From positions 142,245 through 206,244 of IMG/VR virus record IMGVR_UViG_3300026484_000087: a stretch of DNA of 64,000 nucleotides; one strand, written 5' to 3'. Shown piece by piece: positions 3,001 through 52,821 of the stretch. The position numbers and the translations under genes were made by a program. The notes beneath the pieces were generated by a model that was not told the DNA's origin, did no database searches, and saw nothing but the letters and a program-made list of their open reading frames with translations. Numbering within the stretch: position 1 is the stretch's first letter; every line of letters begins with the position of its first letter.

Positions 3001-6000
3001 GAAAATAGAATAGATAGTTTTATACAAAGTACTAAGGATACTGTTAAGGATACAAAGGATACTGTTGTAAACAGTAAACTATATAAAGACAGCATTGAAA
3101 AAATAAAATATATAGAAACATTCTTATCTAATAAAGTAGATAAAATAGTAACTCCAGATATTAAGAGAACAGTTATAGATAAAATAGATTCTTATGTTCT
3201 TGATAAAATGACAGCTCTTGGTAAGATAGATACTGATGATAAACGTAAAACATATGATGGATTACAGAGTGCTAGGGATAAACTAAAAGCTATAGATGTA
3301 AATAAAAATACAACTAAGGATTTTATAAATAGTACAAAATCGGTATATTCAGATATAAATAAATTTGGTCCGAATGAATTTAAAGAACTGGTATCTGATA
3401 TAAAAACTAAATCTATAGATAAGCTTACTGAATTTAAAGGTAGGGTTGAAGATAACGTTGCTATAAACAATATAAAAGATGATGTTATTGAAAGAGCTAC
3501 TGACGTTAAAGAGTTTGTAGACAATAATGAAACAGTTAAAAACATAAAAAACTCTGTTAGTAATGTTGTTAAAGTTAATGATATAAAAGATAGTAAAGCT
3601 GGTAAGTTAATTAAAAAACATATTCCTAAAAGTTTTACTGATAGTATAGCCAACATTAAATCTACTGTATTTGATGCTCCTAAGGATGAGAGAGTACATG
3701 AGTTCGATGTTAATGAAGAAGATAAAACTGAACAACAGGAACTAAAAGATATTCTGTTTAAGATAACTGATAGTTCTGATTCAGATAGTCTTAGATTAAA
3801 TCTAAAAATATATTTGGAAAAAGTAAATAAAGAGATAGATAAAGTAAGTGACTTCATTTCTAAAGATAAAGAAAGAGAACTTAAGTTTAGAGGAAGAGTA
3901 GATAAGTTAAAGAACATTAGTGAAAAACTATTTAATATAGACATTAATGAAAGTTCTACTATAAAAGATCTATCTAAAGAACTTAATGAGGGATTAGGTA
4001 CTCTTATATCTGACGTTACGCCATCTAAGTTTAAAACTAGTAGCGGTCCAACGAAAGAAGAAGAGGATAAAGCTAAAGAAGAAAGTAAAGAAGATTCATT
4101 ATTAGATATACTTGATTCTGATAATCCTATAGATGCATTACAAAGTAAAATTAAGAATGCCGTTAAGTCTAAAATAAAAGGCTTATTAAAATCTGGAGTT
4201 AAAGGTGCTTTTAACTTAGGTAAAGGTATTATTCAGAGAGATATTGAACGTGGTAAAAAACTTAGAGCGTTCCTTAAAAAGAAACTATTTGATAAAAAGG
4301 ATGGTTCACCTGGATTTGTTAAAACTAAACTAAATAAAGGTTTAAACTTTGCTGGTAAGGTTTTAAGAAAAGGTAAAGATCTAGCATCTGATATAAATGA
4401 TAAAAGCATAAATGTAGTTAAAGCTGATATCAGAAATGGTGAACGTCTTAGAGGCATGCTCTTTAAAAGTAAATCTAAAGATAATGAAACAAAACATGAA
4501 GAAGCTAAAACTACAGTAGAACCTATTGTCAAGATATCTAGTGCTACAAAAGATGAAAAAGTAAAAGAGATATCCGATAATGCTAAGGGTACAGTCAAAA
4601 AGAAAAAACCTATTAAATCTAAGAAATCTCATAAACAAAAAAGAGGAATAATAGATCCTTCTACTATTATATATACTAGAGGAGAACATGGACAACGTGT
4701 ACTTAAGAAAACTAGTATAGCTGGAAGTTCTAATAAACTTAGTACTAGTGCTGACAGAGATGGTGATGGTAGACGTGATGGTTCTTGGTTGGATAAGGTC
4801 TCTAAAACAAAAGATGATAAGGTAAAAGCATCTAAGAAAACAAAACAAGTAAAAGGTATATCTGGTAGTGCCAATGTAGTTAAATCTGCTTTCGATAGAG
4901 ATGGTAGCGGTAGACGTGATGGTTCTTGGTTGGATAGACTTAAAAAGAAAAAAGATACTGCGATAAATAGTGGAAAGAACATATTAGCTAAGGCTAAAGA
5001 AAAAGGTTTTTCATGGTTGCCTATGTTAATTGGTGCTTTTGGTTTCTTAAAACCATTGTTGGGCAAATTAATTGGTGGCGTAAGTAGTTTAGGTAAATTT
5101 ATAGTAAATGGTGTTGGAAGTGCTTTTAAATCTGTTGGTAGTTTCTTATTAAATGGAATTAAAGGAATCTTCGGATCATTGGGTAAAATGTTATCTGGTC
5201 CATTAGAGGCTGTTAAGGGTTTTGTTTCTAATGGTATAGACAAAGCCAAGGCTGTTGCTGGAAAAGCTCTTGATGCTGCTAAGAATGCCGGTAGTAAGGT
5301 ATTAGAAGTAGCTAAGAATTCTAAAGCTGGCAAAATTGTTGCTAACGTTGCAAGTAAGGCAAAAAATGCCATTGTATCAGGTGGATCTAAATTATTAAAC
5401 GGAGTTAAGAATTCTAAGGTGGGTGGTGTAGTTGCTAAAGTAGCTAAGAAGATACCTACTGATGGAATACTTAAACTTCTTAAATCTTTTAAAGGTTTAA
5501 TATTTAAGAAACTAGGTAAAAAAGCAGGGGCCACAGTTGCTGCTAAATTGGCTGGTAAAGTTGCATCTAGAATTGTTCCATTTGCCGGAGCAGCATTACT
5601 TGCTTATGATGCTGCTAAAATAGGTTATGATGTCTTCCATAATGGTACTAGTCTTAAGAGTGCCATATCTAAACAGATTCTTGGATTTGATTTATTTAGT
5701 AAAGACGATGTACCTAAAGATGAGGATGGTAATCCTATAAAACCAGATGAGCAAACCTCGGAAGCTTCTAAAGGTAAAAAAGATAATTCAGCTAAAGTAG
5801 AAGCAGTTGTTAAAAAGAAAGTTAAACAAGCTGGATTCATAGATGTTGACGGTAAGAAAGTAAGGGTTTCTACTAAACAAATGGCTATGATAAAGGATTT
5901 AATGGATAAGGGTGAAAGTCAAAAAGCCTTAATGTTATTAAATACTTTAAAAGAACAACAATATAAAGATAAAGATAATGATGCTAAAAATAAAGCGTTA

Positions 6001-7620
6001 GAAGAAGAGAATAATAAAATAGACGAATTTAATTCTAAGATAGATGAAAATAAAACACAATCTAAAAAAGTAATCAAAAAGAAAAGTAAAAAACTTAATA
6101 AAGTTATTTCTATTCTTAATGGCGATAAAAAGAAAATAAGCAAGAAAATAGATAAAGTATTTGAAGATAAGAATATTAATATAAAAGAAAAAAGAAAAAG
6201 AATAAGTAAATTAACGTATATAATAAACAGCATAAATACGATAATTCATGAATTAAAAAATAGTTACGATATAAATGATCCTGAGGATATTGAAGAACTT
6301 GTTAGTTTATATGGTAAAGGCTATAAATATGCTTTAAGTAAATCATTATTAGATACTCTTAATGGCATAGATAAAAATACAAAAGATATAAATACAAAGG
6401 TAAAAAGTAAATATTTAAAAGATCTTAAAGAAGATAAGGATAACAATATAGAAAAACCTAAGGAAGAAAAAGGTTTACTTAGTAGAGCTGCAGATAGCAT
6501 AAAGAATTTCTTTGGATTTAGTAGTAAGAGAGAAGAACCTACTACAATGACCCCTAGTATTAATAGTGCCAGTACAAACAGTGGCGGTAAGATAGCAAAA
6601 CTTAAACCTATGACCGCTACTGATAGTGATCTTATCTCGGACCTTAAACGTGATGAGGGAGTTGTATTACATACATATAAAGATCATCTAGGTTATAAAA
6701 CCATAGGCACAGGACATCTTACTGATGAACGTAAAGGAGGCATTCCATTACGTAAAATAATTGGTGAAGATAAAGATAATATCACTATGGATGAAAATGA
6801 TACTATATTGAAATATGATATAGATAGAACATCTAAAGAGGTAGAATCTAAAATACCATGGTTAAAGAAAAAACCAGAACCGGTTAAAAAATCTATTATT
6901 AACATGGCGTTTAACTTAGGTACTAATGGATTACTTAAATTCAAAAATACTTTAAAACATGTTAAGAATGATGAGTACAATGAGGCTGCTCATGGCATGC
7001 TTAATAGTAAATGGGCAAGACAAGTTGGTAATCGTGCTACAAGAATAGCTAGTACCGTTGCTTCTGTAGATTATGCTACAGCAAAACAACATGATAATAA
7101 AGTTACTGAAAAGCCTTCTGTATTTAATACAGATAAAGCTATAAGTAATAGTAGAAAAGTTGTTCCAGTAGCTAATAATGTTACCTATAAACCAAGACCT
7201 AAAACTGAAGTTAAATCAGTTGCTAAAGTTGAAAGTGTAGCAGCTCCTGTTAGTACTACAAATACTAGTATAGGTAAAACTATAACTAAGAATACTACCA
7301 AAATAAAAGATCCAGCTAAAACTTTAGCGGTTGAAAGTAATAAAAAACTATCTGCTGTTGGAGAAGTTAGCGATAAATCATTAAGCGAATTAAAAACACT
7401 TAATAAGACAATGACTGATTCTCTAGATATACAGAGACAAACATTAGAAGCAATGACTCAAATGTTAAATTTGAATCACGACATGCATAATAGAAGTTTA
7501 AGTATGGATAAAGATATAGTGGATGTAGAGGTATCTAAAACAAAAAAAATAGCTCCTCCGCAAATGCAATCTATGCCTAAACCAGCTATGGGACTTGAAA
7601 AAAGAAGTTTCGCAAGTTAA
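1..7620 (+). CDS. Giant tail/tape-measure-like virion protein (phiKZ gp181-like), 5'-truncated, with internal zincin and C-terminal GH24 lysozyme
   Basis: Frame 1 is open from base 1, so the true start lies upstream of the window. It has a Gly/Ala/Lys-rich amphipathic region (~5000-5650), HEHEH (HExxH) at 2269-2283 followed by PWETEAY, and the T4-lysozyme triad E-x8-D-x5-T (DEGVVLHTYKDHLGYKT) plus MAFNLG..GLLKF and SKWARQV at ~6620-7060. Confidence 0.8.
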   Translation, partial: LSKILKEVSSSRSGNEEEELRFDYDTGSFKTKSDISDNLTTKLDNKLLDSGTTFSIDRILNDIDKEIKLNLSEEELADIKENILMYTINGKSLNPKTLEKNGFYDDLNPELADKFKTAIDKYLNVEDDKLRDTRVSFLNKELNNIKTNAPSPQDILESYDSSGSMDVLVDKGFVKLDEKTGDYKLDKDNYRELLGKSVRNIKDKEEVKDKEYKSFAEKLLADKMKKAGISKDEESVTNEPSSNTGKFFKGIATSVKGFSTNLEQNAIDLVDGKKDISGKISELGKGTKEYITGKKDLSNLSFSTEASDDFNPLAPIKVKRSLLTDFKTGKDFVSGIHSISDVKNILESTDKYKTIESKIKAVKKLAEESENPKEFVESFRKTDEYKKLSTSGKAAIDKVSGTISTVGKAIKEDVENTKTFKTAETAVTRGKKLASDVVNSKPIKKITESKIVTNAIEDLDGIKTKVTNLANLSDMSTVVEELWVKVESKIEELEALDKNDVINKRIEALRNLSSDIEKFEVDENNINESRKTVLGFISTLSKLLSTAIATDVKDTIVSKVSPISKKISHVTNKYTFKKPTIDEKDTNAEEVSKKVEKKTTKQTYKPKPSRKYIKKEAGEVIPGKPTIIAGKASSYKSAVVPDRKPTFDFSDNNAKQAIIDKLKFTKGGQYKFSSSADVEQLKDILKLPAIPVKIVRLLLDFNFIGTIGSDSTMPASFSAAFVKEVPGLKDDYLFLITKQTLDMAEANPEVLIEMISHEHEHLVQTTDGRLRFPQQDESIAGHYYSEIDFDKDKFKTATHLIPFKHYLDSPWETEAYREGYSNVYDYYIENGIIPEKTTREEFIKQAQDTNFKQIRDQNKVILKQYEDLFKQNNAPWYYDKEGDIDYDKIPSLKAMQETPTSFTYESPNGPDDGVVDVNAEQIDIGGDPKVAAGIKTDRKETLKDKLSRQKDKLVNTGKDISKKVTANKTVDKLLHKNKDLTKMSFSTEDNSFNKLAPVKRENRIDSFIQSTKDTVKDTKDTVVNSKLYKDSIEKIKYIETFLSNKVDKIVTPDIKRTVIDKIDSYVLDKMTALGKIDTDDKRKTYDGLQSARDKLKAIDVNKNTTKDFINSTKSVYSDINKFGPNEFKELVSDIKTKSIDKLTEFKGRVEDNVAINNIKDDVIERATDVKEFVDNNETVKNIKNSVSNVVKVNDIKDSKAGKLIKKHIPKSFTDSIANIKSTVFDAPKDERVHEFDVNEEDKTEQQELKDILFKITDSSDSDSLRLNLKIYLEKVNKEIDKVSDFISKDKERELKFRGRVDKLKNISEKLFNIDINESSTIKDLSKELNEGLGTLISDVTPSKFKTSSGPTKEEEDKAKEESKEDSLLDILDSDNPIDALQSKIKNAVKSKIKGLLKSGVKGAFNLGKGIIQRDIERGKKLRAFLKKKLFDKKDGSPGFVKTKLNKGLNFAGKVLRKGKDLASDINDKSINVVKADIRNGERLRGMLFKSKSKDNETKHEEAKTTVEPIVKISSATKDEKVKEISDNAKGTVKKKKPIKSKKSHKQKRGIIDPSTIIYTRGEHGQRVLKKTSIAGSSNKLSTSADRDGDGRRDGSWLDKVSKTKDDKVKASKKTKQVKGISGSANVVKSAFDRDGSGRRDGSWLDRLKKKKDTAINSGKNILAKAKEKGFSWLPMLIGAFGFLKPLLGKLIGGVSSLGKFIVNGVGSAFKSVGSFLLNGIKGIFGSLGKMLSGPLEAVKGFVSNGIDKAKAVAGKALDAAKNAGSKVLEVAKNSKAGKIVANVASKAKNAIVSGGSKLLNGVKNSKVGGVVAKVAKKIPTDGILKLLKSFKGLIFKKLGKKAGATVAAKLAGKVASRIVPFAGAALLAYDAAKIGYDVFHNGTSLKSAISKQILGFDLFSKDDVPKDEDGNPIKPDEQTSEASKGKKDNSAKVEAVVKKKVKQAGFIDVDGKKVRVSTKQMAMIKDLMDKGESQKALMLLNTLKEQQYKDKDNDAKNKALEEENNKIDEFNSKIDENKTQSKKVIKKKSKKLNKVISILNGDKKKISKKIDKVFEDKNINIKEKRKRISKLTYIINSINTIIHELKNSYDINDPEDIEELVSLYGKGYKYALSKSLLDTLNGIDKNTKDINTKVKSKYLKDLKEDKDNNIEKPKEEKGLLSRAADSIKNFFGFSSKREEPTTMTPSINSASTNSGGKIAKLKPMTATDSDLISDLKRDEGVVLHTYKDHLGYKTIGTGHLTDERKGGIPLRKIIGEDKDNITMDENDTILKYDIDRTSKEVESKIPWLKKKPEPVKKSIINMAFNLGTNGLLKFKNTLKHVKNDEYNEAAHGMLNSKWARQVGNRATRIASTVASVDYATAKQHDNKVTEKPSVFNTDKAISNSRKVVPVANNVTYKPRPKTEVKSVAKVESVAAPVSTTNTSIGKTITKNTTKIKDPAKTLAVESNKKLSAVGEVSDKSLSELKTLNKTMTDSLDIQRQTLEAMTQMLNLNHDMHNRSLSMDKDIVDVEVSKTKKIAPPQMQSMPKPAMGLEKRSFAS

Positions 7621-15944: not shown

Positions 15945-15976
15945 GATACTGCCACGTATCTACATATATTATATAT
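15945..15976 (-). promoter_or_regulatory. Class I promoter-like ATATATAAT plus GATAC-GTGGCA-GTATC leader hairpin
   Basis: One of four copies with identical 7-nt spacing. Confidence 0.7.
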
Positions 15977-25271: not shown

Positions 25272-25303
25272 GATACTGCCATGTATCTATATTAATAATA
25301 TAT
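25272..25303 (-). promoter_or_regulatory. Class I promoter-like ATATATTAT plus GATAC-ATGGCA-GTATC hairpin
   Basis: Copy 2 of 4. Confidence 0.7.
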
Positions 25304-33088: not shown

Positions 33089-33120
33089 GATACTGCCTAG
33101 TATCTATTTTAATAATATAT
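33089..33120 (-). promoter_or_regulatory. Class I promoter-like ATATATTAT plus GATAC-TAGGCA-GTATC hairpin
   Basis: Copy 3 of 4. Confidence 0.7.
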
Positions 33121-36677: not shown

Positions 36678-39600
36678 TTATTTTATCTCAGTAGTATCTT
36701 TAGTAACCACATTAGGTTTATCTACAGTTTCATCTTCATAAACTATAGTTTTTAGTTCATTTATATTAACTAAACCATTTATATCTATTTCATTATTTAT
36801 AGAAATAGTATCTTTTGTTTTATCTAAACTACCTTTAAGTTTAGGACTATACATATCTACAGGAGTTCTATTATCGCCTATCACATTAGGTTTACTAGAT
36901 TTATCTCTATCCATATCATACATAATTGTTCTTGTTGTACTAACATTTATTTCACCTATTACTACATCCGTATTTATATTAGATGTTTTATTTGTTTCAA
37001 TATCTTTTGTTCTACTTAACTTAGGTTTAAACATTCCTACATCTACTTTACCATCAGTAGCTATTAAAGCTGGTGTACTATCTACCCCATCCTCATTACT
37101 ATATATAATAGTATTTAACTCGCTACTTATAGCAAGACCAGTAAGATCATTAACATTTATAACTTCAGTATCCTCTAATTCTAAAGTTTCTGTTTTTGGC
37201 ATAACTGGAACAAACATGTTGTCTAATTCATTATCTATAGAACCAACAAGTTCAGGTACTATAGTTTTAGCCAAATTGTTTTCCTCTACCCTACCAATAC
37301 CAGTAACATCCTTTTTGGTTTTACTACCTTTAATTGTATTGTCAACAACATATTCAGTATCTTTGAAAACAATCTCTACTGATTTATTTATTTTAGGTTT
37401 AAACATATCTACATTAGAACTCATATCACCTATTAATTCAGCATCATTGTTTGTATTTAAATCTTTACTATATAATAGGGCTTTAACAAACTTGCGATTA
37501 TATGTACCAGTGAATGTATCTGTAGTTAAAGTATATGTTTCATTTAACTTATATCCTTTAGCTGTACTAGTTGGACTAAACATATCATCTAGATCACTAT
37601 TTACAGAACCATATAGTACGGGGTTAAGGTCTCCCGCTATAACTGGTGACATATTAAGAAGTATACCATTGGTAGTTTTAACTCTTTTACTACCAACAAT
37701 AGTCTCAGTAATTATGCCATCTATATCATCGGCTCTATTGCTAATAACGTCTGTTACTAAAGGTTTGAATAGGTTAAGTGCAACATCATTGTTTCCTATT
37801 AAAGATCCAACTTCATATTCACTTATCTCACCATTTTCACCATACATTATTATTTTATTTATATCTTGTAGAACGTTACCTTTATAATTTATACCTTTAG
37901 GTATAGAATCAAGGATATCCTTTTCATCTACAGAACCTGTTTTAAAATCAGGTTTAAATAATGTTAATGTTGATAAATTAGTATTAAATTTACCTATAGG
38001 AGCAACATCTACCCATATATCTTTACTATTTATATCCATAGTAATTTTATTGGCATCACTTCTACTTGTACCAGAGACAGTACTCGTATTAATTGTAGTA
38101 TCCAAACCATCAACTTGTTCATTGGAGTTAACTCTAAACTTAGGATGATACATCTCTATTATGTTCTTAGTAGTATTGAAGTAAACATTAGGTTCTATAT
38201 CACCATCTATAACATTACTTGTATTATAGAACATCATTTCATTCTTACCAGTAACACTACCCATAGGAACATAGTTTTCACTGTAAGGATTTCTTACAAC
38301 TTCATCTATACCGTAAGTTATACCGTCAACTTTTGGAGAGAACATATCTATGGTTTTATAGTTTCTACTACCTCTAAGTACTGGCTTGCTTCCATCATTA
38401 GGTCTATTATCTATATCTTCTAATAATACTTCCATATGATTATTGATATATCTACCTTTACTAGTATCAAAGCTGCCAGCCACTATTCTATATGATTCAT
38501 TTATACTAAATACTTCAGATCTAGGCTTATAAAGTTTAGTATCAGCTTTTCTAACAGAACCGTATACGTTTGGTTTATTAGAGCTTTCTATATCCATTGT
38601 TTCATTAAACATAGTAAGTACATTATGATCATTATTTAAAGAACCATTGTATCCATAATTATTTTTCATTGGAACAAGATCTTCTGCTAATGGGTTATAG
38701 ATATTTGAAACATTTGGTTTAAAGTAATCCAAAACTCTCATACCAGTATCTATGATAGCAGTTGGTTTATTATTTTCTAAAATATCATCTGTATACATTC
38801 TAAGTTTGGTTGTATTTATTTGTACTCTACCAAAACCTTTGGTAAAGTTACTTACGAATGCTAATGTAGTATCCTCTACACTAGTATTTAAAGCTACAAT
38901 AGGATTAAACATATTTATAATACTATTATTAGTAGATACCTTAAATGTAGAAATTTCACTAGACCACAATTCTTTACTAATAACAGACATACTCACCATA
39001 TTTCTATGGTTATTAGTTTTACCCATAACAACCGTTTTGGATGCTGAATAATTTATACTAGATACTTCATCATTAGTTATGCCGCTAACTATAGGACTAA
39101 ACCAATTAAGTACGTCTTTATTAACGTGTCCTAGAACATTAGGTATGGTACTAAAATCCTCATATAGTTTAACATCCGTAACGCCTTTACCAAGATTACC
39201 ATACATACTTACTCTATATTCTATTTCAGAATTAAGTACTTCCCTTTCTTTCTTATCCATGCTAATATTAGGAGAATACATATTCACTGTACCAAATTCA
39301 CTAACAAAAGATAATACTGGAAGGGTGCTGTTTTCAAGATCATGATGTAATTGCATATCCATTTTAACAGGAGTATTTAAAACAGTACCTGATAATTTAT
39401 TTACGGTATTTATACCATCTATAAACGTTCTATCAAAACCACCATTGGATAACAGGATAGGACTATACATTGTTATAGAGGCTTTTTTGCTCCTACTTAT
39501 CATAGTTGTCTGTTCTACAATAATATCAGTTTTATCAACATGCATTGTAATAATATTATCATCAGTTCTAGATGAACCATGAATAAACTCATTTTCTGTT

Positions 39601-42600
39601 TTATCTATAACATCTACAATATCATTTATGTTTCCACTAACTATAGGAGAGAACCATTTAAGTAGTCTCTTACTTGTATTCATCACTAATGTAGGCATAG
39701 CATTATCGGTATTTAATCCAGTTTCCCCACTAACTATAAGTTTGGTTTCACCTCTTTTTATGTTAACGTTACTATTAAACTTATTACTTATGAATTTTAA
39801 ATCAAGAGTAATATTTAAAGTATCTGTTGTAAATGTTGGTTTAAAGAAATCAATGCCTTTTAAAGGAACATTGGCTATAAGAGTACTTGTCTCTTGATAC
39901 ATTTCAGAATCATAGTTCTCGATTCTTGTTTTTAAAGTATGGTCTTTAGCTATACCTTTAATATATGTATCTTTAAAATACTCAGTACTTTCTTTATTGT
40001 TTTTATCTATAAACGATCCTATTTTAGGAGAGTACATATTTAAACTAGACTCTATGTTTCTTATAAGATTAATAGAAGTCTCTCCAGTTATAGAATGTAT
40101 TCCATCAGACATAAGTAATTTAACCTTAGCCTTTTGTTTACCATAAGGAATCATGCTAGCGTTAAATACGTTGTCTATTGTTTTATAATAATCTTCATCA
40201 TTTTTACCACTATCTAAGCTAGGTCTAAACATATCTGGTATACCACCAATACTATAAGTAATATTAGGCATACTATAATTGAAAATACCTAAAGGCGTTT
40301 CCATAGTTATGTTTATACTATCTTGTTTAATGTAACCTGTTTGACCTCTATCTATAGTTAAAGAATCACTTTTGTTCATGGTCTTATCTGACATAGATTT
40401 AACTGTAGGTTTATACCAATCTAATAGTCTTCTGTTTGTACTCATAACCATTTCTGGTTTGCCATTTACTTCAACATTACTTGATATATCATAAAGCTTA
40501 AATTTGGTAACATCATTTATAAAATTACCATAACTTAAGTTAAATGAATTAGAACCTATGGTCTGAATTATATTATCAGACTTACTGTTAACTATCGGAC
40601 TAAATAGTCTAAAAGACAATGGTCCAGCAGTTGTGGTAATCGTAGGTGTATTAGAATAATCCAATTCTTTACTATACCACTCCATAGCAGTTTGGATGTA
40701 TCTTTTAACAACTCTACCAACTTTACTAGTCTCACTACTAGCTAATTGGATAATATCTTTCATATCATTTATTTTAGTACCTATATAAGGTCTAAACATA
40801 GTTAGATATGATTTATTGCTAAATACAACATCAGGCATTTCATTTTTAACATGTAGTACATTGGTTAACGCTAAACGTTCTTCAGGTTCGTATAACATTA
40901 ATTTAGGAGGATTTATTCTGGTATAACCTCTTGGTATCATCAATTCTATATCAGACTTTAAGAAGCATCCATAAGGAGCATCTCTGGCGGCCATATAACC
41001 ATAAAAGTCTTCAAGTGCTCTAAATGTACCTTCATGAATATCAATGATACCAGGAGTACTTATTGACATATTTGTATTATATCTAGTAGACATAACATCT
41101 AAACTATTTGTACTATTCATAAACTGTATTGTGCTAGAAGATAAGTTTTTAACTATCTTAATATATTTGTCAACCATTTCATTAACATCATCTTTATCAA
41201 AATAGAATCCAGTAAATGCATAAAGAACCTTATTTAATGTTTCTTTATAATCATATACGTCTGTAAAATAGAAATCCACAAATTGGTTAGCCATTAGTTC
41301 GTCTATAGTACTATCTCCTTGATTGAAGATAATAGTCTCTTTCATATGTAAACGTTTATACATTGTTTTTATAGAATTGTTTATGAGCATATCGTTAGAG
41401 TTTGTTGCTATATTCCAAATTACTGAATTAAAACTATTCAAGTCTTTTAAATATTGATTAAATATATCTCTATCTAAGTATGTTAGTCTATCTGGTCTTA
41501 ATTCTATAAGTTTTTTAGCTATGTCATATGTTATAGTAGGGTTTATCATGTTATAATTAAGGGCATCCACTGTTATAACGCTATTTAAAAGTTTATTTGC
41601 AGTATAAGATGGAATCTTTGGATTAACATTGCCACTAATAACTGCTAGTAACTTAAGAATTAAGAAAGCTGCTTGCTTAGCATCTAAGTCATAAGTAAAT
41701 CCAGTATTATTATCTATAAATGTTATTGATGTTTTATAAATATCTCTAAATGCCATTTGTATAAAGTTATCTAGAACCATTTTTAGTTCTATCTTATTCT
41801 CAACTACATAAGATCTATTCACTTTTATCTTAAATGTTTTAGTTTTTTGTTTATTGAATTTATTTTTATCCAATTTATATTCTAAGGTATTGTCGTAAAA
41901 ATTCGTATCTTTTATAACCATATCGTTATCTACAAATGCTTTACTAAATTGTCTAAGCAATAAAGCCTTACCACTTGTATCATCATTATCATCTATTAGA
42001 TAATAATCATTTCTTCTTTTAGATATGAACCTATTCTCTTTTTTATCATATATTGGCTTAGTTATATCTGTTAAATTCAATAAGTCTTCATCTGGTAAAC
42101 CGTTTAGAAGTTCTACCTCAGCTACGCCTATACCATTTTCAGTAAGTATCTTTTCTATAAGTATATCAAGAGTTTTGTTTTTACCTATATTATTCTTGAT
42201 ATATCTAAGATTCTTATATAACCAAAACCTAGTTTCTTTACTAAGAACCTTAACATCTACATCTATACCATAATTAGATCTAAAAAATTCATAGATATGA
42301 AAACTGTGTGCTTCAGATGTAAAGATATAATCCTGTCTTATATTCAATGTTTTTAAAACCATTTTAGTATAGAGTGTTGCTAATAGTGACGGTATATAAA
42401 GATCATCAATTATGCCATAATCTCTAATATGCCAACGTAGAAAATAGTTCTTAGAGAACTCATTAAGTCTATGTATTAAATTGGTTTCCTGCTCTTCAAC
42501 TAGATAAGGACTATGTGCAACTAATTCTCCATTAGTGCAGTTAATGACATCGTTTATATCAAGTCCATATATAATACCCTTTATAAGCAATTCATCTTCA

Positions 42601-42935
42601 GGATACTCTGCTACTAAATCATTATAGTATGTATCAAATTTCTTTAATTCATTTCTAGTAGTCTTATATTTATCAAGGAGTTCTTTAGTTAGTTTTTGAA
42701 CAGAACCATCTTCAATGATAGTTATATTTATTCGATGGTCTAATTTATGATATTCTCCAGATATGTTCATAAAGTATTTCCAGGTAGTACGATCCTCTGG
42801 TTCATCTCCTAGAATACTTGTGCCGTATATTTTAACAAGTTCATTGTTAATTTGTATTGCTGTATCTATACTGAGAATGATTAAACTTTTAATCAATCTT
42901 ACAGTATCTTCAATATATTTTGTAGTTGTAATCAT
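36678..42935 (-). CDS. Large virion structural protein (phiKZ-like baseplate/tail N-domain) with long C-terminal repeat array
   Basis: The N-terminal ~600 aa carry WKYF.N.SGEYH..D, EEQE..LI and LYKNLRY motifs. The remainder has about 24 degenerate ~50-55-aa repeats ending in (M/L/W/Y)(F/Y)(S/K)P. Confidence 0.7.
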   Translation of the reverse strand: MITTTKYIEDTVRLIKSLIILSIDTAIQINNELVKIYGTSILGDEPEDRTTWKYFMNISGEYHKLDHRINITIIEDGSVQKLTKELLDKYKTTRNELKKFDTYYNDLVAEYPEDELLIKGIIYGLDINDVINCTNGELVAHSPYLVEEQETNLIHRLNEFSKNYFLRWHIRDYGIIDDLYIPSLLATLYTKMVLKTLNIRQDYIFTSEAHSFHIYEFFRSNYGIDVDVKVLSKETRFWLYKNLRYIKNNIGKNKTLDILIEKILTENGIGVAEVELLNGLPDEDLLNLTDITKPIYDKKENRFISKRRNDYYLIDDNDDTSGKALLLRQFSKAFVDNDMVIKDTNFYDNTLEYKLDKNKFNKQKTKTFKIKVNRSYVVENKIELKMVLDNFIQMAFRDIYKTSITFIDNNTGFTYDLDAKQAAFLILKLLAVISGNVNPKIPSYTANKLLNSVITVDALNYNMINPTITYDIAKKLIELRPDRLTYLDRDIFNQYLKDLNSFNSVIWNIATNSNDMLINNSIKTMYKRLHMKETIIFNQGDSTIDELMANQFVDFYFTDVYDYKETLNKVLYAFTGFYFDKDDVNEMVDKYIKIVKNLSSSTIQFMNSTNSLDVMSTRYNTNMSISTPGIIDIHEGTFRALEDFYGYMAARDAPYGCFLKSDIELMIPRGYTRINPPKLMLYEPEERLALTNVLHVKNEMPDVVFSNKSYLTMFRPYIGTKINDMKDIIQLASSETSKVGRVVKRYIQTAMEWYSKELDYSNTPTITTTAGPLSFRLFSPIVNSKSDNIIQTIGSNSFNLSYGNFINDVTKFKLYDISSNVEVNGKPEMVMSTNRRLLDWYKPTVKSMSDKTMNKSDSLTIDRGQTGYIKQDSINITMETPLGIFNYSMPNITYSIGGIPDMFRPSLDSGKNDEDYYKTIDNVFNASMIPYGKQKAKVKLLMSDGIHSITGETSINLIRNIESSLNMYSPKIGSFIDKNNKESTEYFKDTYIKGIAKDHTLKTRIENYDSEMYQETSTLIANVPLKGIDFFKPTFTTDTLNITLDLKFISNKFNSNVNIKRGETKLIVSGETGLNTDNAMPTLVMNTSKRLLKWFSPIVSGNINDIVDVIDKTENEFIHGSSRTDDNIITMHVDKTDIIVEQTTMISRSKKASITMYSPILLSNGGFDRTFIDGINTVNKLSGTVLNTPVKMDMQLHHDLENSTLPVLSFVSEFGTVNMYSPNISMDKKEREVLNSEIEYRVSMYGNLGKGVTDVKLYEDFSTIPNVLGHVNKDVLNWFSPIVSGITNDEVSSINYSASKTVVMGKTNNHRNMVSMSVISKELWSSEISTFKVSTNNSIINMFNPIVALNTSVEDTTLAFVSNFTKGFGRVQINTTKLRMYTDDILENNKPTAIIDTGMRVLDYFKPNVSNIYNPLAEDLVPMKNNYGYNGSLNNDHNVLTMFNETMDIESSNKPNVYGSVRKADTKLYKPRSEVFSINESYRIVAGSFDTSKGRYINNHMEVLLEDIDNRPNDGSKPVLRGSRNYKTIDMFSPKVDGITYGIDEVVRNPYSENYVPMGSVTGKNEMMFYNTSNVIDGDIEPNVYFNTTKNIIEMYHPKFRVNSNEQVDGLDTTINTSTVSGTSRSDANKITMDINSKDIWVDVAPIGKFNTNLSTLTLFKPDFKTGSVDEKDILDSIPKGINYKGNVLQDINKIIMYGENGEISEYEVGSLIGNNDVALNLFKPLVTDVISNRADDIDGIITETIVGSKRVKTTNGILLNMSPVIAGDLNPVLYGSVNSDLDDMFSPTSTAKGYKLNETYTLTTDTFTGTYNRKFVKALLYSKDLNTNNDAELIGDMSSNVDMFKPKINKSVEIVFKDTEYVVDNTIKGSKTKKDVTGIGRVEENNLAKTIVPELVGSIDNELDNMFVPVMPKTETLELEDTEVINVNDLTGLAISSELNTIIYSNEDGVDSTPALIATDGKVDVGMFKPKLSRTKDIETNKTSNINTDVVIGEINVSTTRTIMYDMDRDKSSKPNVIGDNRTPVDMYSPKLKGSLDKTKDTISINNEIDINGLVNINELKTIVYEDETVDKPNVVTKDTTEIK

Positions 42936-47152: not shown

Positions 47153-47183
47153 GATACTGCCTGTATCTAAGTTAATAATATAT
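47153..47183 (-). promoter_or_regulatory. Class I promoter-like ATATATTAT plus GATAC-AGGCA-GTATC hairpin
   Basis: Copy 4 of 4. Confidence 0.7.
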
Positions 47184-47204: not shown

Positions 47205-47230
47205 GATAACCTAGATTAATCTAGGTTATC
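47205..47230. terminator. 26-bp perfect palindrome
   Basis: GATAACCTAGATTAATCTAGGTTATC over the stop of the RNAP-subunit gene. Confidence 0.7.
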
Positions 47231-48910
47231 TATTTCAACTTCTATCTCCGAATTAAGAATCTCTTTATTCTCAATTATTTTACCATTAAACATCTTATCT
47301 AATAGTGTTATGCTTTCCATAATATCTTCTTTCGGCTTGAGTCTACCACTAGCTATATCTAATGTTATAAATGGATTTATTCTAAGCTTTGGTGTAGGTG
47401 CTTTCTTAGGTAGGTATAATATACTACCCATAAATAAATCTGGACCAGTAATAGTTCTAGTAGCCTTTGGGAATACTTGAGATTTACTCTTGGTAACATT
47501 CTTACCACGTTCCTGTAACTCAAGTACTGAAGTAATCTTATGGTACTTATTATCACTAGCATAATCCGTAAGCAACATTGTAATGTTCTGGTTTGAACTC
47601 TTAATAAGCATAAATATCTTCTTAGAGGATATGTTAGCGTTGAATATTCTAGTAACCTCATTTATAGCAAGATCTTTCTTAAGAGATTTTCTAGTAAGTT
47701 CAAAGATAGTTTTGTTTATACCAAGTATGATGTCATACATAATGTAATATAGAACATCTATGTATCTATTAAATATATTGTTATTATATGTTTTACTATT
47801 TAATAACCACTCGCTATATTTACCAAGTATAACCGCTAACAGATCAAAGAAGTCGTTAACCATAATTCCTATTTCTGCTAACTTTGTCTTAATTAGATTA
47901 TCTATATAAGACTTTAAAGATATAAAATGATCAACTATATCTGCATAGATTCTATCTGCAGAATAATTGTTCTTAAATATGATTTTACCTAACATAAGTT
48001 TCCAGTAAACCAACTCATTCTTTAAATCTCCAGAATTTATAACATCAACCATTTCATTAGCATTAGCAGGTAGTGCATCTAAGGTATATATTAGGCCTAC
48101 TATGATGTTTTCTACGTAAGGAGTAGTTTTACCCTTTGGAACTAAAACTTTAACGTTATGACCAATGTAGTGCGTTTCTTTAAGGCTTCTTGGTTTAAGC
48201 TTTATAGATTCATAAATATCATGTGTTTCTTGATACTTACTAACGTCTTGATCATATGTGATTATAGGTTCTATGCCAGCATACTTTAAGAATGTATCTT
48301 TAAAACCATACTCTGCTAATAAATACAATGCTATAGGTGGCACTATGCTTCCAAGATCATCCTTTATGGCTCTAGTAGAAACTCTATAAATAGTTGACGA
48401 TATTACTTGTCCAGCTATCTTATTGCCATTTAGGATAACGTTTCTATTTGTACGGGTAAAGATAAGTTTATCTCTTAATAGACGTATAAATACTTTCTTT
48501 TCATCTGGACTAACAACAGTATCTGAAAGCACTGGTACTATATGGTATTTAGTATCAGATATATGCATCATACCACCATCTTCTAAAAATGGCATATATA
48601 AATATCTTTTAGGCAATGGTGCTCCATTGTAACTAAATAATAGTTCTATCTTATAAATATCCGATACCGCTATATCATAATTTATTCTATTGTTACCAGT
48701 TGTAAATAAAGTATCGTATTCTTCTTTAGGAGATAACATTCTCCAGCCATGGTATTCTAACTTTTCAGTAGCTGATTTCATAGCACTTCTAATTATAGCA
48801 TCTATATATTCTGGTGCTGATTTAACAGATTCAGTTGCTATACCGTTAACCACGGCATCGTTAAAATGAGGAACACAATTATCCATCATTTTACTTAAAA
48901 CATCATTCAT
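47216..48910 (-). CDS. Non-virion RNA polymerase beta N-terminal subunit (phiKZ gp123-like)
   Basis: YLYMPF...G...ISDTKYHIVPVLSD.V.S....VF.RLLRDKL.F motif, located two genes from the capsid gene as in phiKZ. Confidence 0.78.
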   Translation of the reverse strand: MNDVLSKMMDNCVPHFNDAVVNGIATESVKSAPEYIDAIIRSAMKSATEKLEYHGWRMLSPKEEYDTLFTTGNNRINYDIAVSDIYKIELLFSYNGAPLPKRYLYMPFLEDGGMMHISDTKYHIVPVLSDTVVSPDEKKVFIRLLRDKLIFTRTNRNVILNGNKIAGQVISSTIYRVSTRAIKDDLGSIVPPIALYLLAEYGFKDTFLKYAGIEPIITYDQDVSKYQETHDIYESIKLKPRSLKETHYIGHNVKVLVPKGKTTPYVENIIVGLIYTLDALPANANEMVDVINSGDLKNELVYWKLMLGKIIFKNNYSADRIYADIVDHFISLKSYIDNLIKTKLAEIGIMVNDFFDLLAVILGKYSEWLLNSKTYNNNIFNRYIDVLYYIMYDIILGINKTIFELTRKSLKKDLAINEVTRIFNANISSKKIFMLIKSSNQNITMLLTDYASDNKYHKITSVLELQERGKNVTKSKSQVFPKATRTITGPDLFMGSILYLPKKAPTPKLRINPFITLDIASGRLKPKEDIMESITLLDKMFNGKIIENKEILNSEIEVEIDNLD

Positions 48911-48957
48911 ATATTCTCCTTATATAATAATTCAATTAACTCATTTAATGACAATTT

Positions 48958-50205
48958 TTATTTATAAATTGTCGGTAAAAACTTAATAATACCACCGAGT
49001 AAACCAATGGCATTAGTTGTAGTTTTTATTCTTTCAGCATTTACTTTATGTCTATGTATTTGCTCATCTCTTATGACATTTATCGTATTGGATAAAGTAT
49101 CACTCTTGATTTTCAATAAACTTGCCTTATATCCAATAAGTTTAGTTTCTCTTTCTATTTTAGCTAAATCAACTGCTGTTACATATTTTAATTCCTCCAT
49201 TTTACTTTCATGTTTACGCTTTACTGTTTCATTACTTAATTGTTGTTTAGACAATTCAACTTTATTATCTTCTATATCCAACTTCCTATATAATAACTCC
49301 TTGTTAACATCTTCTAATATTAATTTCTTATCACCATTAAATCTAGCTAACTCCTCTGTCTTATAAATACCTATGTTATCTAATTCAGATAACTCAAATT
49401 CCGTTCTATCGGCAAGTAATTCATTATCCTTTTTAATTATGTAAGTAACACCATTGGCTTTCGTATTAGATGGATTAGATAAAAATCTTTGTACTTTATT
49501 ACCTAGTTGCATATAATAAGGCCTATATGGATTATCGTTATCAACTATATCTATAGATACAGTATTTGGATGGTCATCATTAAGTATCCTATAACGTTTT
49601 AACTTATCAGTTTCGGTTAATGAATTAGGATGCTTAACTATATCAGTTGGCATACCTTTAACTATAGCTACGTTATTATTACTAACAAATAAATACTTAT
49701 AATGGTCTATATCATATTTAGGTATATACGTAACTATGCGTACGGTAATAGAATTATTTAAACTACATGTAGCTATCTTTGATTCTATCTCCTTTATAGT
49801 ATGTTCCGTAAGATCCGCTGCTCTTCTATAATATTTCATTAATGAATGAATATTAACGCCAGTAACATCCAATATGGTATAGCGTTCTATTATATATACG
49901 CCTAAACCACTGCTCTTATCCACATCATCCTTAGTATTATACTTTATACCAAATGACGTTATATCACTATAGTTACGTATAGGCAAAGCTATGTTCCTTT
50001 CATCTATCATAAATAGATTATTACCCATATTAGTAAATACATGCTTCGTATAATCTGGATTACCGTAATGTTGATTACGTACAATATTATCATCGTTGAA
50101 AGAATTATTTATTCTATTTGATCTAAACACCTCATCATTGTATCTTTGTTCTGGACTTTCAAAAACTCTATTAAATTCGGATACAGGTGTAAAAGGTACG
50201 TTCAT
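48958..50205 (-). CDS. Conserved hypothetical protein with C-terminal coiled coil
   Basis: 415 aa, AAGGAG RBS and a class I motif at 50282-50290. Confidence 0.75.
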   Translation of the reverse strand: MNVPFTPVSEFNRVFESPEQRYNDEVFRSNRINNSFNDDNIVRNQHYGNPDYTKHVFTNMGNNLFMIDERNIALPIRNYSDITSFGIKYNTKDDVDKSSGLGVYIIERYTILDVTGVNIHSLMKYYRRAADLTEHTIKEIESKIATCSLNNSITVRIVTYIPKYDIDHYKYLFVSNNNVAIVKGMPTDIVKHPNSLTETDKLKRYRILNDDHPNTVSIDIVDNDNPYRPYYMQLGNKVQRFLSNPSNTKANGVTYIIKKDNELLADRTEFELSELDNIGIYKTEELARFNGDKKLILEDVNKELLYRKLDIEDNKVELSKQQLSNETVKRKHESKMEELKYVTAVDLAKIERETKLIGYKASLLKIKSDTLSNTINVIRDEQIHRHKVNAERIKTTTNAIGLLGGIIKFLPTIYK

Positions 50206-50305
50206 ATATTCTCCTTATATTTTGTTATACGAATAAATTTGGAGACTTTATATTTCCACACTTATTCGTATTTATACATAAATAATATATGGTTAAGATT
50301 ATTTC

Positions 50306-50522
50306 AAAAAAAAAAATAAGATGTACGCTACGCCAACTGAATGACGTAACATATCTTTTTGGCAGTATCTTTTCTTAACTATATTACTGCTACCGCAAAC
50401 GTACATTTCTATACGGACTCATACTTTAGAACTATAAGGAGTTAAGAATTCTAAAGTATGTTTCTCTCCCTTATAATACATCATTCGATTACTTAGGGAT
50501 TACATATATCAGCTATATGTCA
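50306..50522 (-). ncRNA. Candidate ~200-nt structured small RNA
   Basis: Own class I motif (50528-50536), 12-bp stem CATACTTTAGAA/TTCTAAAGTATG (50420-50460), and a 3' hairpin plus T11 tract. No RBS-led ORF. Confidence 0.45.
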
Positions 50523-50568
50523 TGTAAATAATATATGATTAAAAAAGATTTAAAACTAATAAAGATAC

Positions 50569-50598
50569 AGTACTGTATGGAATTAACCATACAGTACT
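50569..50598 (-). terminator. Capsid operon terminator-like hairpin
   Basis: AGTACTGTATGG-AATTAA-CCATACAGTACT. Confidence 0.7.
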
Positions 50599-50652
50599 AT
50601 TGTATCTAAATGCATTGTTTTTTTTTTTGGATATACTTATATCAATCAGCTA

Positions 50653-52821
50653 TTAAACTGTTGCAAAGTTTTTAGTAACTTTACCTAGTGACTCTTCAAT
50701 ACCACTAATGTTAATAACAGTTAGAATAGGTAGTTGAGGAACATGTAAGAATCTTGGTAATGTAGAAAGTTCTCTAACGATGCTTCCACCTCTGTTAGCA
50801 ACAACATCTAAAGAAACTTCTGGAGACCAGAAACATACACCAAAACCAAGTGGGTTAACTTTTTCATTTTTACTTGCACCTGTATCACCAAATGAAATGA
50901 ACATTTTACCTTTAACTAGTGGATTTTGAGTAGTAGCTAAATGTACTTCAAACTCATCACCAATTTCAATTTTACCAGTACCATTTGTTAAGTATTGTGC
51001 AGTTCTACTATCTGTACCAATGATTACCGAAGTTTTACCAGCAACACCACCATTAAGAACTTTACTAGCGATAGCGTAGTTAGATTCAATGAACATTTTG
51101 ATAACTTCATCTTTAATTTTACCAGTTAATGTACCTTTAATATCTTCCATTTTCTCACCAGATCTAACTGAGTCAATGTTGTTAGCAATATTTAAGTTTG
51201 TTTCATTATAGTAAGCATCTACAAAGAATCTTGATACACCAAGAATTGCAGCATCTTTAACATTACCATTAGATGTAATTTGTCTTAAAGTTTCAGAGAA
51301 TGAAACAAGAGTATTTACAGCTTCAAGAGACATTTTGATACCAGTGAATGCTACTTGTGAAGCAAGGTATGTTGCATCGTTGTCAGTATCATTAGAGTTA
51401 CCAACTGTTTTAAGAATTGTTACACCTGATCTAACTGGAACAGTATAGATTTGGTTATGAATATCAACACCAACTAATTGACCTCTTTGTCTAATGTTAG
51501 AGTTAGTTGTATAAGCTTCTACAGAGTAAGCTCTAGGTTTACAAGTTTCAATAACTGCAGCAATTGCTTTGTAGTTATCATTATCTTCATCAAGAATATT
51601 TCCACCAGCATCAAGAACTTCAACAAGTTTAACAGAAGAACTGTATACAGCAACATCACCAATTTGAGTATTACCATCACCATGAAGAACAAGTTCAACT
51701 CTAACAGTATAGTTTTGAGCAAGTTGTGCTAAGATTTCAGAACCAGCACCATTCCATTGTTTAGTAGCAGCAGTATTTAAGATCATTCCATCTGTTGTGA
51801 AAGAAAGCATTAAATCTTTGTTATGATCTTGTGTGCTATATGTAAAGTTTGAATGTGGTAACATAGAAATGTTAAATTTGAATGTTTCAGTAATCTCTTT
51901 ATCATCAGCATCTTTACCAGTAAGATCAAAGAATACATCTTGAACTTGAACTCTTCTATCAAGAGCATCAGTATTATCCATAACACCTTTAGCAAGTTGT
52001 GCATCAGTTTGAGAAACACCTAATACAGAAATAGCTTTACCCATTTTTAATGGAGCAGTAGTGATTTTCTCACCTTTTTCAGTATTTACAGTTTTAAGAT
52101 CAGCAGCAAGTACTGCAGCATTTTCTTCTCTTAATACAGGAACAAGTAGGTTTTTATCTACAGATAAGATAGTTGGATCAACGATAGCTTTAACAATTGA
52201 TTTTTTATTAAATTTACCTCTATCAGATGCACCATTAGTACCTCTTGTAACTTCATCATAAAGATTGATAACTCTAGCTTCAATACTAGCACCAGAAGAT
52301 GTAGGATCAATTGTAACAGTTGGGAAGAATAGTTCACCAAATGCATCTTGTTTAGAAGCAAGTAAGTTATATACAACAGAGAAGTAAACAGCAGAGTTAA
52401 TAGTTTGACCATCAAAAGACTCTACAGAGATATTTTCTGTATCCATGATATCTTCAACACCAAGTGCCATAGCATCTACAGTACCAACAACATTTTGTGC
52501 AGTAACAGCTTTAAGGTTATTTAAATTTTGTCTAGCAGCAGTTGGATCCATTGCAAGACCAGCAACTAGTTGTGCAGCTTTTAATTGTGCAGCAGTTGGA
52601 TCAAAATCTTCCATACCTTCAGAAGAGATAACTGAATCAATTGTATTTTGTACAATTTCATTAAGAGAGTCTAAACTAGACTTAGCTGTAGCGGCAGTAC
52701 CTTCATCCATGCTTTCTGAAGAGATTACAACTTGTGTAATTTCTGGTCTATTAGTAAGACCGTGTACTGTTAAACCTGTTTTCATTCCGTCAATAAGACC
52801 TACAATGTTTGTTTTATCCAT
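50653..52821 (-). CDS. Major capsid protein (phiKZ gp120-like)
   Basis: 722 aa with QDAFGELFFPT.TIDP, DNTDALD and N.RQRGQL motifs, S-x-E sites in the prodomain (ISVE/SF) and strongly biased codon usage. Confidence 0.88.
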   Translation of the reverse strand: MDKTNIVGLIDGMKTGLTVHGLTNRPEITQVVISSESMDEGTAATAKSSLDSLNEIVQNTIDSVISSEGMEDFDPTAAQLKAAQLVAGLAMDPTAARQNLNNLKAVTAQNVVGTVDAMALGVEDIMDTENISVESFDGQTINSAVYFSVVYNLLASKQDAFGELFFPTVTIDPTSSGASIEARVINLYDEVTRGTNGASDRGKFNKKSIVKAIVDPTILSVDKNLLVPVLREENAAVLAADLKTVNTEKGEKITTAPLKMGKAISVLGVSQTDAQLAKGVMDNTDALDRRVQVQDVFFDLTGKDADDKEITETFKFNISMLPHSNFTYSTQDHNKDLMLSFTTDGMILNTAATKQWNGAGSEILAQLAQNYTVRVELVLHGDGNTQIGDVAVYSSSVKLVEVLDAGGNILDEDNDNYKAIAAVIETCKPRAYSVEAYTTNSNIRQRGQLVGVDIHNQIYTVPVRSGVTILKTVGNSNDTDNDATYLASQVAFTGIKMSLEAVNTLVSFSETLRQITSNGNVKDAAILGVSRFFVDAYYNETNLNIANNIDSVRSGEKMEDIKGTLTGKIKDEVIKMFIESNYAIASKVLNGGVAGKTSVIIGTDSRTAQYLTNGTGKIEIGDEFEVHLATTQNPLVKGKMFISFGDTGASKNEKVNPLGFGVCFWSPEVSLDVVANRGGSIVRELSTLPRFLHVPQLPILTVINISGIEESLGKVTKNFATV

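Follow-up and report, generated by a model that had tools for sequence, protein, structure and literature searches.

A predicted small RNA beside the capsid gene of an uncultured phiKZ-like jumbo phage may pair with the leader tag of early mRNAs

Described systems and how this locus compares

Small RNAs of jumbo phages have been catalogued, none of them with a known target or function (PMC11512511, PMC8244752). In 201phi2-1, ONT-cappable-seq and dRNA-seq data list 11 sRNAs, including sRNA005 upstream of the gp182-type tail gene; the sRNA at that position is conserved, and in phiKZ one is predicted and remains unconfirmed (PMC11512511, PMC8244752). A 2025 review of phage-derived sRNAs mentions neither jumbo phages nor leaders. 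The RNA that we predict here is similar to the sRNAs of 201phi2-1 and phiKZ in being a short non-coding unit with a phage promoter and an intrinsic terminator, and among those sRNAs, too, some are intergenic and some keep their position in related phages. Unlike sRNA005, which belongs to the 5' UTR of the tail gene, it lies elsewhere in the genome, a class-wide target is predicted for it, and its seed covaries with that target.

The promoters involved also have described counterparts. In AR9, early transcription follows the consensus AAATATATATTAT-(6N)-G+1, the site read by the virion polymerase that the phage injects; in phiKZ and phiR1-37, too, transcripts begin 6 nt past an AT-rich element (PMC5312081). 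In the phiKZ scheme, the nvRNAP genes are driven by early promoters. The promoters described here share with those of AR9, phiKZ and phiR1-37 the AT-rich ATATATTAT, a start site 6 nt downstream and a place before nvRNAP subunit genes. Unlike in AR9, about 15 of them lead into a transcribed hairpin that hardly varies (AGATAC-nn-GGYA-GTATC); the words 'hairpin' and 'stem-loop' are absent from the AR9 paper (PMC5312081). Short and nearly identical early promoter/stem-loop cassettes repeated before many early genes are not unprecedented: the PeSL of T4-type phages, in which a terminator stem-loop precedes a sigma70 promoter, have been discussed as recombination substrates (PMC2839356, PMC4122927). 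Unlike in PeSL, the stem-loop here lies 3' of the promoter (at about +2 to +17, as predicted), where it would be transcribed, and it is complementary to an RNA encoded in trans.

Nearest in logic is the c4 RNA of phages P1 and P7. c4 pairs with short boxes in phage mRNA and covers the ribosome site, and its boxes co-vary between phages; it serves immunity in temperate phages, where one operon is both its source, by processing, and its target. The short co-varying boxes are alike, whereas the unit described here has its own promoter, belongs to a virulent-type jumbo phage and faces a box common to many unlinked transcripts; it does not match the C4 family of Rfam. CopA/CopT and RNAI/RNAII are antisense pairs that are cis-encoded, fully complementary and initiated at loops. 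The pairing that we propose would likewise start at a hairpin loop and spread by strand displacement, unlike theirs with a trans-encoded regulator and a match of only 9-12 nt. Trans-acting sRNAs of phages are already known; what would be new is one predicted to target a tag that a whole temporal class has in common.

The DNA that was analysed, a stretch of 64,000 nucleotides referred to below as the window, corresponds to bases 142245-206244 of a 206-kb IMG/VR viral contig (G000), 29.8% G+C. The phage is uncultured and metagenomes are the sole source of knowledge about it; the public runs that contain it are hydrothermal-vent, epibiont and biofilm samples. A near-identity DNA search of GenBank phages gave no match, the best capsid relatives among GenBank phages are at most 34% identical, and a search for tRNA and tmRNA found none. 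The locus of interest is a gap of 447 bp (50206-50652) between two groups of genes:

50653 to 52821, minus strand: major capsid protein gene of the phiKZ gp120 type (PF25620, E 6e-132; phrog_3231, E 2e-127), the upstream neighbour of the predicted sRNA unit
47216 to 50205, minus strand: operon downstream of the gap, with a 415-aa gene and a 564-aa gene
48958 to 50205, minus strand: 415-aa gene, the first of the downstream operon, with its ATG at 50205
47216 to 48910, minus strand: 564-aa homologue of phiKZ gp123, an nvRNAP subunit (PDB 7ogp_E, E 1e-34; phrog_2943)

A phiKZ-type capsid together with a gp123-type nvRNAP subunit therefore points to a phiKZ/AR9-like jumbo phage.

The transcription unit in the gap

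The minus strand of the gap carries the parts of a complete transcription unit: an early-type promoter, a 5' hairpin, a variable body, the segment GATACTGCC and a T11 terminator. Listed from the capsid gene downwards, with the neighbouring signals, the features are:

50564 to 50628, minus strand: terminator of the capsid gene, with A11 (50618-50628), a conserved CAATGCA..TTAGATACA, a long hairpin (50564-50606) and a T-rich tail
50521 to 50556, minus strand: P1, the promoter of the sRNA, with the core ATATATTATTTA (50525-50536), a conserved A/T-rich upstream part and a predicted +1 at G 50521; its inner motif ATATATTAT lies at 50528-50536
50306 to 50521, minus strand: predicted sRNA of 216 nt, defined by promoter and terminator, without conserved ORF or SD and without Rfam family
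50502 to 50520, minus strand: 5'-terminal hairpin of the sRNA, with a 7-bp stem ACAUAUA/UAUAUGU
50420 to 50460, minus strand: 14-bp stem in the sRNA, whose loop displays the anti-SD-like CUCCUUAU (50434-50441)
50361 to 50369, minus strand: seed GAUACUGCC (DNA segment GATACTGCC), complementary to the leader sequence GGCAGUAUC
50306 to 50355, minus strand: intrinsic terminator of the sRNA, with a hairpin (50320-50355) and T11 (50306-50316)
50275 to 50290, minus strand: P2, promoter for the 415-aa and nvRNAP subunit genes, with ATATATTATTTA at 50279-50290 and a predicted +1 at A 50275
50227 to 50271, minus strand: 5' hairpin of the P2 leader, followed by an SD (50211-50216) and the ATG at 50205

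Read as ATATATTAT-6N-G, P1 equals the published AR9 early consensus (PMC5312081). From this match and its spacing we infer that what the original prediction had called a class I motif is a virion-RNAP early promoter of the phiKZ/AR9 type; that it acts early is likewise an inference. The AR9 spacing therefore puts the start of the sRNA at G 50521, that of the P2 transcript at A 50275 and that of the cassette mRNAs discussed below at the A of TAGATAC. Early-type motifs precede about 20 genes, all on one strand, including the operon of the gp123-type nvRNAP subunit, and P2 in front of that subunit gene is consistent with the phiKZ scheme.

Relatives were recovered through the capsid protein as a graded series: L015/L165 (98% capsid identity to the window), G001, which is the same as L003 (86%), L023 (83%), L022 (77%), L020 (74%), and L024, L025 and L026 (64-68%). 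The four closest lineages (L015/L165, G001 = L003, L023 and L022) have an sRNA-type unit at the same site. At the capsid site of relatives of 64-74% capsid identity the unit is absent, leaving only a terminator and one promoter, and these relatives still carry GGU leaders. A sixth unit was found in another context, between a 182-aa and a 261-aa gene of a 99-kb contig (G002:7336-7575). The predicted RNAs measure 216 nt in the window, 216 in L015, 93 in L003, 259 in L023, 371 in L022 and 225 in G002; all six start with G, and their bodies are unrelated and cannot be aligned. What the six loci have in common is a promoter with an upstream A/T block, a 5' stem, GAUACURCC, and a terminator with a U-run. 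The five capsid-linked RNAs begin with GACA..AUAG; the 5' stem begins at nt 1-3 in all six, in a sequence that differs by lineage, and every locus has a terminator, again with a stem sequence particular to its lineage. GAUACURCC is thus the sole conserved internal segment of bodies of 93-371 nt, and in five of the six loci it occurs as RGAUACURCC(A)AA placed 4-6 nt 5' of the terminator, the exception being G002, where the seed is about 100 nt away from it. The distance from the gap copy of the seed to P2 varies (about 75, 95 and 165 nt).

Wider searches added little to this set. When viral contigs were scanned for the seed followed by a spacer and a T-run, more than 119 stretches came back; after these had been screened for the promoter and leader motifs, none of them belonged to this phage group. 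A search with the sRNA 5' end as the pattern brought up G001 and two unrelated giant-virus contigs and nothing more, the leader pattern did not occur in a collection of genome contigs, and the only homologues recovered for the 478-aa neighbour came from the L015 lineage. A copy of the seed near position 13283 of G003 lies in a long divergent intergenic region with no clear promoter and was left uncounted.

The gap region has a predicted folding energy of -57.5 kcal/mol (z = -4.3), which none of 200 shuffles equalled, and a terminator scan finds four sites against 0.5 expected. The capsid-gene terminator is bidirectional in form, and relatives keep its hairpin with a different stem sequence; the L003 counterpart of the P2-leader hairpin is longer and differs in sequence. 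Most of what the original prediction had read from sequence alone held: the 447-bp gap, the minus-strand motif at 50528-50536 and the T11 tract, a second such motif serving the next gene (50279-50290, before the SD and ATG of the 415-aa gene), and a leader-complementary segment at 50361-50369. The stem at 50420-50460 is where it had been placed, with 14 bp instead of the claimed 12. The claim of nested stems failed: ATAAGGGAG (50466-50474) and its partner CTCCTTAT (50434-50441, minus strand) form a stem that excludes the one at 50420-50460, and because CTCCTTAT sits in the loop of the 14-bp stem, the two can be read as alternatives or as a strained pseudoknot. The ATAAGGGAG/CTCCTTAT stem is moreover weakened in the closest relative, where GGGAG becomes GGGAA. 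The seed itself is only moderately unpaired in the predicted ensembles (0.16-0.73). An Rfam search, one of the checks that the original prediction had proposed, yielded no family: with Rfam 15 at the gathering threshold there were no matches in the window, L003, L156 or L176 (C4, riboswitches and known phage RNAs included), and at E<=1 the sole match was a chance hit on the capsid terminator.

Could the unit code for a small protein, or be a remnant without function whose structure arose by chance? In favour of the former, the window does contain an ATG ORF of 35 codons at 50299-50406. This ORF has no SD, however, its frame is broken in L015, and it is absent from L003, L022 and L023; no ORF with an SD or common to the loci was found, and in the L003 unit no ORF reaches 12 codons. 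A remnant is contradicted by the conservation of promoter, seed and terminator in six loci. We regard either possibility as very unlikely.

Evidence that the unit is transcribed comes from a metatranscriptome run (X4), available as Logan contigs of a phage variant with 98% capsid identity. In this run, a 186-nt contig matches 50335-50520 end to end at a depth of 7.3, its upper end falling 1 nt inside the predicted +1. The capsid contigs are separate, beginning at 50666 and reaching depths of up to 45; no X4 contig covers 50521-50665 or 50205-50334, and the 415-aa gene is covered at 49186-49410 only, at a depth of 3.8. In three DNA runs, single contigs span the whole region, and the uneven pattern of X4 argues against DNA carry-over. 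The contig thus supports, without proving, a separate RNA: it comes from a single RNA run for which there are no raw reads, and strand, ends and level are beyond what contig data can tell. A variant shared by L015 and the X4 contig (50429 G>A on the plus strand) gives independent support for the strand, since it turns a G-C pair of the 14-bp stem into G-U, a change tolerated only in a minus-strand RNA. The independent sRNA of about 200 nt that had been proposed is therefore supported (216 nt predicted) by the conserved positions of promoter and terminator and by the contig from an RNA library, with its strand and exact ends inferred.

A referee might object that the unit acts in cis, as an insulator or attenuator between a strongly expressed capsid gene and an early operon, with read-through tuning the expression of the 415-aa/gp123 operon. 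Two terminators and two promoters within 447 bp would fit this view, and 8 of the 11 sRNAs of 201phi2-1 stem from premature termination within 5' UTRs. Against it, the operon has no need of P1 because P2 lies between the sRNA terminator and the gene; the RNA is thus not continuous with the mRNA, as a cis-acting leader, attenuator or riboswitch would be, nor is its body (93-371 nt) conserved. Pure insulation would not keep a 9-nt segment tracking sequences elsewhere in the genome, the G002 unit sits in another gene context, and relatives do without the unit. A cis role thus appears unlikely.

Leader tags and the covarying seed

The early promoter motif extends into a 32-nt cassette, ATATATTATT-aAag-TAGATAC-nn-GGCAGTATC, whose DNA is almost invariant. 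The whole genome has 15 copies, every one on the minus strand and followed by an SD (UAAGGAG in this phage) and a start codon. The transcribed part is predicted to fold into a tag hairpin, AGAUAC-nn-GGCA-GUAUC, with a GAUAC(U)/(A)GUAUC stem and a GGCA loop, at about +2 to +17 of 15 early mRNAs, and the target 9-mer GGYAGTATC would occupy about +9 to +17 of these 15 leaders genome-wide. These positions depend on leader start sites inferred from the AR9 rule and not measured; a start 3' of the 9-mer would mean that there is no RNA target. All early transcripts here, that of the sRNA included, are predicted to begin with a 5' stem, and the P2 leader itself lacks the 9-mer. The original prediction had counted four leader hairpins, which is right for the window (the genome total being 15), where they are:

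47153 to 47183, minus strand: early promoter and leader hairpin before a 478-aa gene
33089 to 33120, minus strand: early promoter and leader hairpin before a 353-aa gene
25272 to 25303, minus strand: early promoter and leader hairpin before a 134-aa gene
15945 to 15976, minus strand: variant early promoter ATATATAATAT and leader hairpin before a 431-aa gene

Annotation of the leader-bearing genes with PHROG and Pfam was mostly uninformative.

The complementary sequences are distributed very unevenly. GGCAGTATC occurs six times in the window, against 0.15 expected; in the 206-kb G000 it occurs 13 times on the minus strand, always in leaders, and only three times in the opposite orientation, one of these being the gap copy. 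With two wobble sites added to the 13 perfect ones, the seed has 15 targets in G000. In G001 (110 kb), five cassettes contain GGTAGTATC and two further copies run the opposite way, one of them inside the 93-nt unit, and L022, L023 and G002 show the same leader/antisense pattern. On these counts, we judge that the complementarity between seed and leaders is not due to chance. The tag being an inverted repeat, GAUAC, which makes up five of the nine paired bases, also has the same sequence as the tag's 5' arm; what separates complementarity from similarity is UGCC/UACC, the complement of the loop GGCA/GGUA, together with the flanks. The idea that the gap copy is a leader-cassette remnant in the same orientation was considered and rejected: it is the tag's complement, and not the tag, that the seed continues to match after GATAC(T), the same-sense match in G001 ends after GATAC, and no promoter is found at the cassette distance before the seed.

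The position that changes between lineages falls inside this discriminating UGCC/UACC part. Seeds, leaders and the resulting pairs are as follows:

Window/G000: seed GAUACUGCC; 13 GGC and 2 GGU leaders; G-C and G.U
L015/L165: seed GAUACUGCC; one GGC leader; G-C
L022 with L177: G-type seed; one GGU leader; G.U
L023 with L176 (same sample): A-type seed; one GGU leader; A-U
G001: seed GAUACUACC; 5 of 5 leaders GGU; A-U
G002: seed GAUACUACC; 3 of 3 leaders GGU; A-U

Seed and leaders thus change in step across the related phages, and the A.C combination (an A seed with a GGC leader) was not seen in any of the lineages compared. The pairings of L022 with L177 and of L023 with L176 rest solely on a common sample and on complementary gene fragments, a gene truncated by the end of L022 having its C-terminal remainder on L177. 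A flanking pair covaries as well, CCU facing A-GG in G002 and CCA facing U-GG in G001 and L023. The capsid tree, ((window, L015), (G001, L023)) with support of 91/97 and L022 outside, suggests a simplest history in which an ancestral G.U pair apparently became A-U through a change of the sRNA in one branch and G-C through a change of 13 leaders in the other, although few independent events stand behind it. Repetition of cassettes in the manner of PeSL may explain how 13 leaders changed in concert. Passage through G.U is a signature of RNA pairing that a DNA-site model would not predict. Calculated on short segments (RNAduplex on whole-length RNAs gave unrealistic duplexes with long loops), the observed combinations form duplexes of -14.8 to -17.4 kcal/mol and the unobserved combination of seed A with GGC only -10.2 kcal/mol; the leader hairpins themselves have energies of -4.3 to -6.0 kcal/mol. 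Compensatory change between seed and leaders is therefore present, on the strength of few independent events. The pairing with the leaders that had been proposed gains support from the conserved 9-nt segment and this covariation, while physical pairing and the opening of the hairpins remain inferred.

Another challenge is that GGYAGTATC could be a DNA-level operator or a polymerase-contact site, in which case the gap copy would be an extra, inverted site, for example for the control of P2, and complementarity at the RNA level a mere by-product. In support of this rival, the 9-mer belongs to a 32-nt cassette whose DNA hardly varies, the leader of P2 has no 9-mer of its own, and a site in double-stranded DNA functions in both orientations. 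Against it, the copy keeps its distance from the sRNA terminator (4-6 nt in five loci) and not from P2; the G002 unit has no P2-like partner nearby; in the L022 lineage the copy corresponds to GGC and the sole leader to GGT, which is a mismatch in DNA and a G.U pair in RNA; and the stretch is present in RNA. We consider a DNA site unlikely.

It is also conceivable that the RNA is real and that the leaders are not its regulatory targets: it might act on a host mRNA, on another phage RNA or on a protein, or the leaders might serve as a sponge for it. The complementarity is only 9-12 bp long, the sRNA has the same class of promoter as its supposed targets, the ratio of 15 targets to one sRNA gene is unfavourable, and host targets are outside the reach of any scan as long as the host genome is unknown. 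Nevertheless, the seed follows the leaders across lineages and the flank covaries in G002, neither of which a host target would predict, so that this explanation, too, seems unlikely.

Proposed mode of action

We favour, by a modest margin, the reading that the unit encodes a phage trans-acting sRNA that pairs with the leader tag of early mRNAs. The reading is founded on what is shown: the anatomy of the unit and how it is conserved, its complementarity to and covariation with the leaders, and its occurrence in an RNA library. The strand and ends of the RNA, pairing in vivo, and regulation and its direction are inferred. In this model, the sRNA would be made from an early promoter of the virion RNA polymerase type, starting at about G 50521 and stopping at about 50306. 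Its functional core would be a seed of 9-12 nt (GAUACUGCC and flank), complementary to the loop and 3' arm of the tag: UGCC would nucleate on the loop GGCA, and the seed would then displace the 5' arm, which has the identical sequence GAUAC, opening the 5'-terminal hairpin and leaving the first ~8 nt of the early mRNA single-stranded. A 5'-terminal stem protects an RNA against decay that depends on the 5' end. In most lineages, the CUCCUU motif could in addition pair with the SD of the same mRNA and cover the ribosome site. The outcome would probably be a coordinated repression of the early class, by decay, by a block of translation or by both, and hence a delayed negative feedback run by the same polymerase. 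Coordinated down-regulation is the direction we favour, less firmly than pairing itself: the sign is inferred and activation is not excluded. The timing logic is speculative since the sRNA and its targets share one promoter class.

A bolder reading, to which we give rather less credence than to its negation, is that early transcripts throughout this jumbo-phage clade bear one 5' tag, a short hairpin with the loop GGYA, and that the sRNA is a dedicated riboregulator that reads it and thereby controls the whole early class post-transcriptionally. Opening of the protective hairpin together with the anti-SD block would then amount to an RNA-based switch from early to later expression, tag and seed co-evolving via a G.U intermediate. 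The predicted target is a tag on an entire temporal class transcribed by the injected polymerase, a prediction that comes solely from sequence and is supported by covariation. If true, this would be the first mechanism of post-transcriptional class switching in phiKZ-like phages, it would give a function to the conserved leader hairpin, and it would provide a compact, portable pair of tag and sRNA for co-regulating many genes.

The anti-SD-like motif deserves separate mention. It is absent 5' of the seed in L003; CUCCU(U) does precede the seed in four of five independent lineages (window/L015, L023, L022 and G002), and the background of CUCCU on the sense strand of these genomes is 0.4-0.6 per kb. 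Anti-SD followed by seed in the sRNA mirrors the order of tag followed by SD in the mRNA, so that both could pair at once, and it is possible, by inference, that the motif adds occlusion of the ribosome site. Its placement differs: it occupies the loop of the 14-bp stem in the window and L015, and lies 8 nt before the seed in L022.

Leader cassettes across the genome

The early promoter and its transcribed hairpin make up a nearly invariant 32-nt cassette that occurs 15 times in the whole 206-kb genome (G000), on one strand only; 11 copies lie elsewhere in the genome and the others in the window:
15945-15976, (-), leader cassette
25272-25303, (-), leader cassette
33089-33120, (-), leader cassette
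47153-47183, (-), leader cassette

Because 13 of the 15 copies carry GGC where all related phages have GGT, the cassettes have probably changed in concert, through selection or recombination between copies. Possible recombination between repeated copies is also where they resemble PeSL, the promoter-stem-loop cassettes of T4-type phages.

Other sRNA-like units and structured RNA

The predicted sRNA has a second type of locus in a related phage contig:
G002:7336-7575 (= L156:1222-1461), (+), sRNA-like unit

In this unit an early promoter is followed by a 5' hairpin (GAGAU/AUCUC), CCUCCUC and the seed GAUACUACC; after the seed come two hairpins, and a terminator with a T11 tract closes the unit. 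The neighbouring genes encode 182 and 261 aa, with no capsid gene adjoining. Another sense-oriented copy of GATACTACC, of ambiguous standing, is found in a second contig (G003, around 13283, in stretch L159), where divergent genes are separated by over 450 nt of non-coding DNA; this copy has no recognisable canonical early promoter.

Directly before the capsid-gene terminator, the 3' UTR keeps CAATGCA..TTAGATACA in the window and in two related loci:
window 50596-50615, (-)
L003, about 6203-6221
L023, about 2860-2882

Its AGATAC hexamer is identical to the leader 5' arm and to the start of the sRNA seed, and in the window it pairs at the foot of the terminator stem (GATAC/GTATC).

At four further early promoters the transcript would begin with a long structured leader that has no start codon nearby:
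G000 64738, 108346 and 123729 (-), all beyond the window
G001 (related contig) 29870

The 123729 leader and its G001 counterpart have ATAGTCGATTGGATCCAGTCGCC in common. These leaders could represent further non-coding RNAs or regulatory leaders.

Giant ORFs, assembly and the nvRNAP gene

Two giant ORFs lie in the window:
1-7620, (+), over 2539 aa, left open where the window begins
36678-42935, (-), 2085 aa

A more complete assembly of this phage may exist, since the same 478-aa protein is also recorded, in the protein collection, on a 213,312-bp contig, which exceeds the 206,244 bp of the record analysed.

In a relative, the gp123-type nvRNAP gene stops at 76% of its length:
L176:1614-2431, truncated nvRNAP end and insertion-like stretch

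Some 440 nt of structured non-coding DNA of higher G+C and a 124-aa ORF lie 3' of the shortened gene and have the look of an intron or of a mobile insertion; no Rfam family matched. The same gene region is also broken into several ORFs in G001 (L003:7864-10166).
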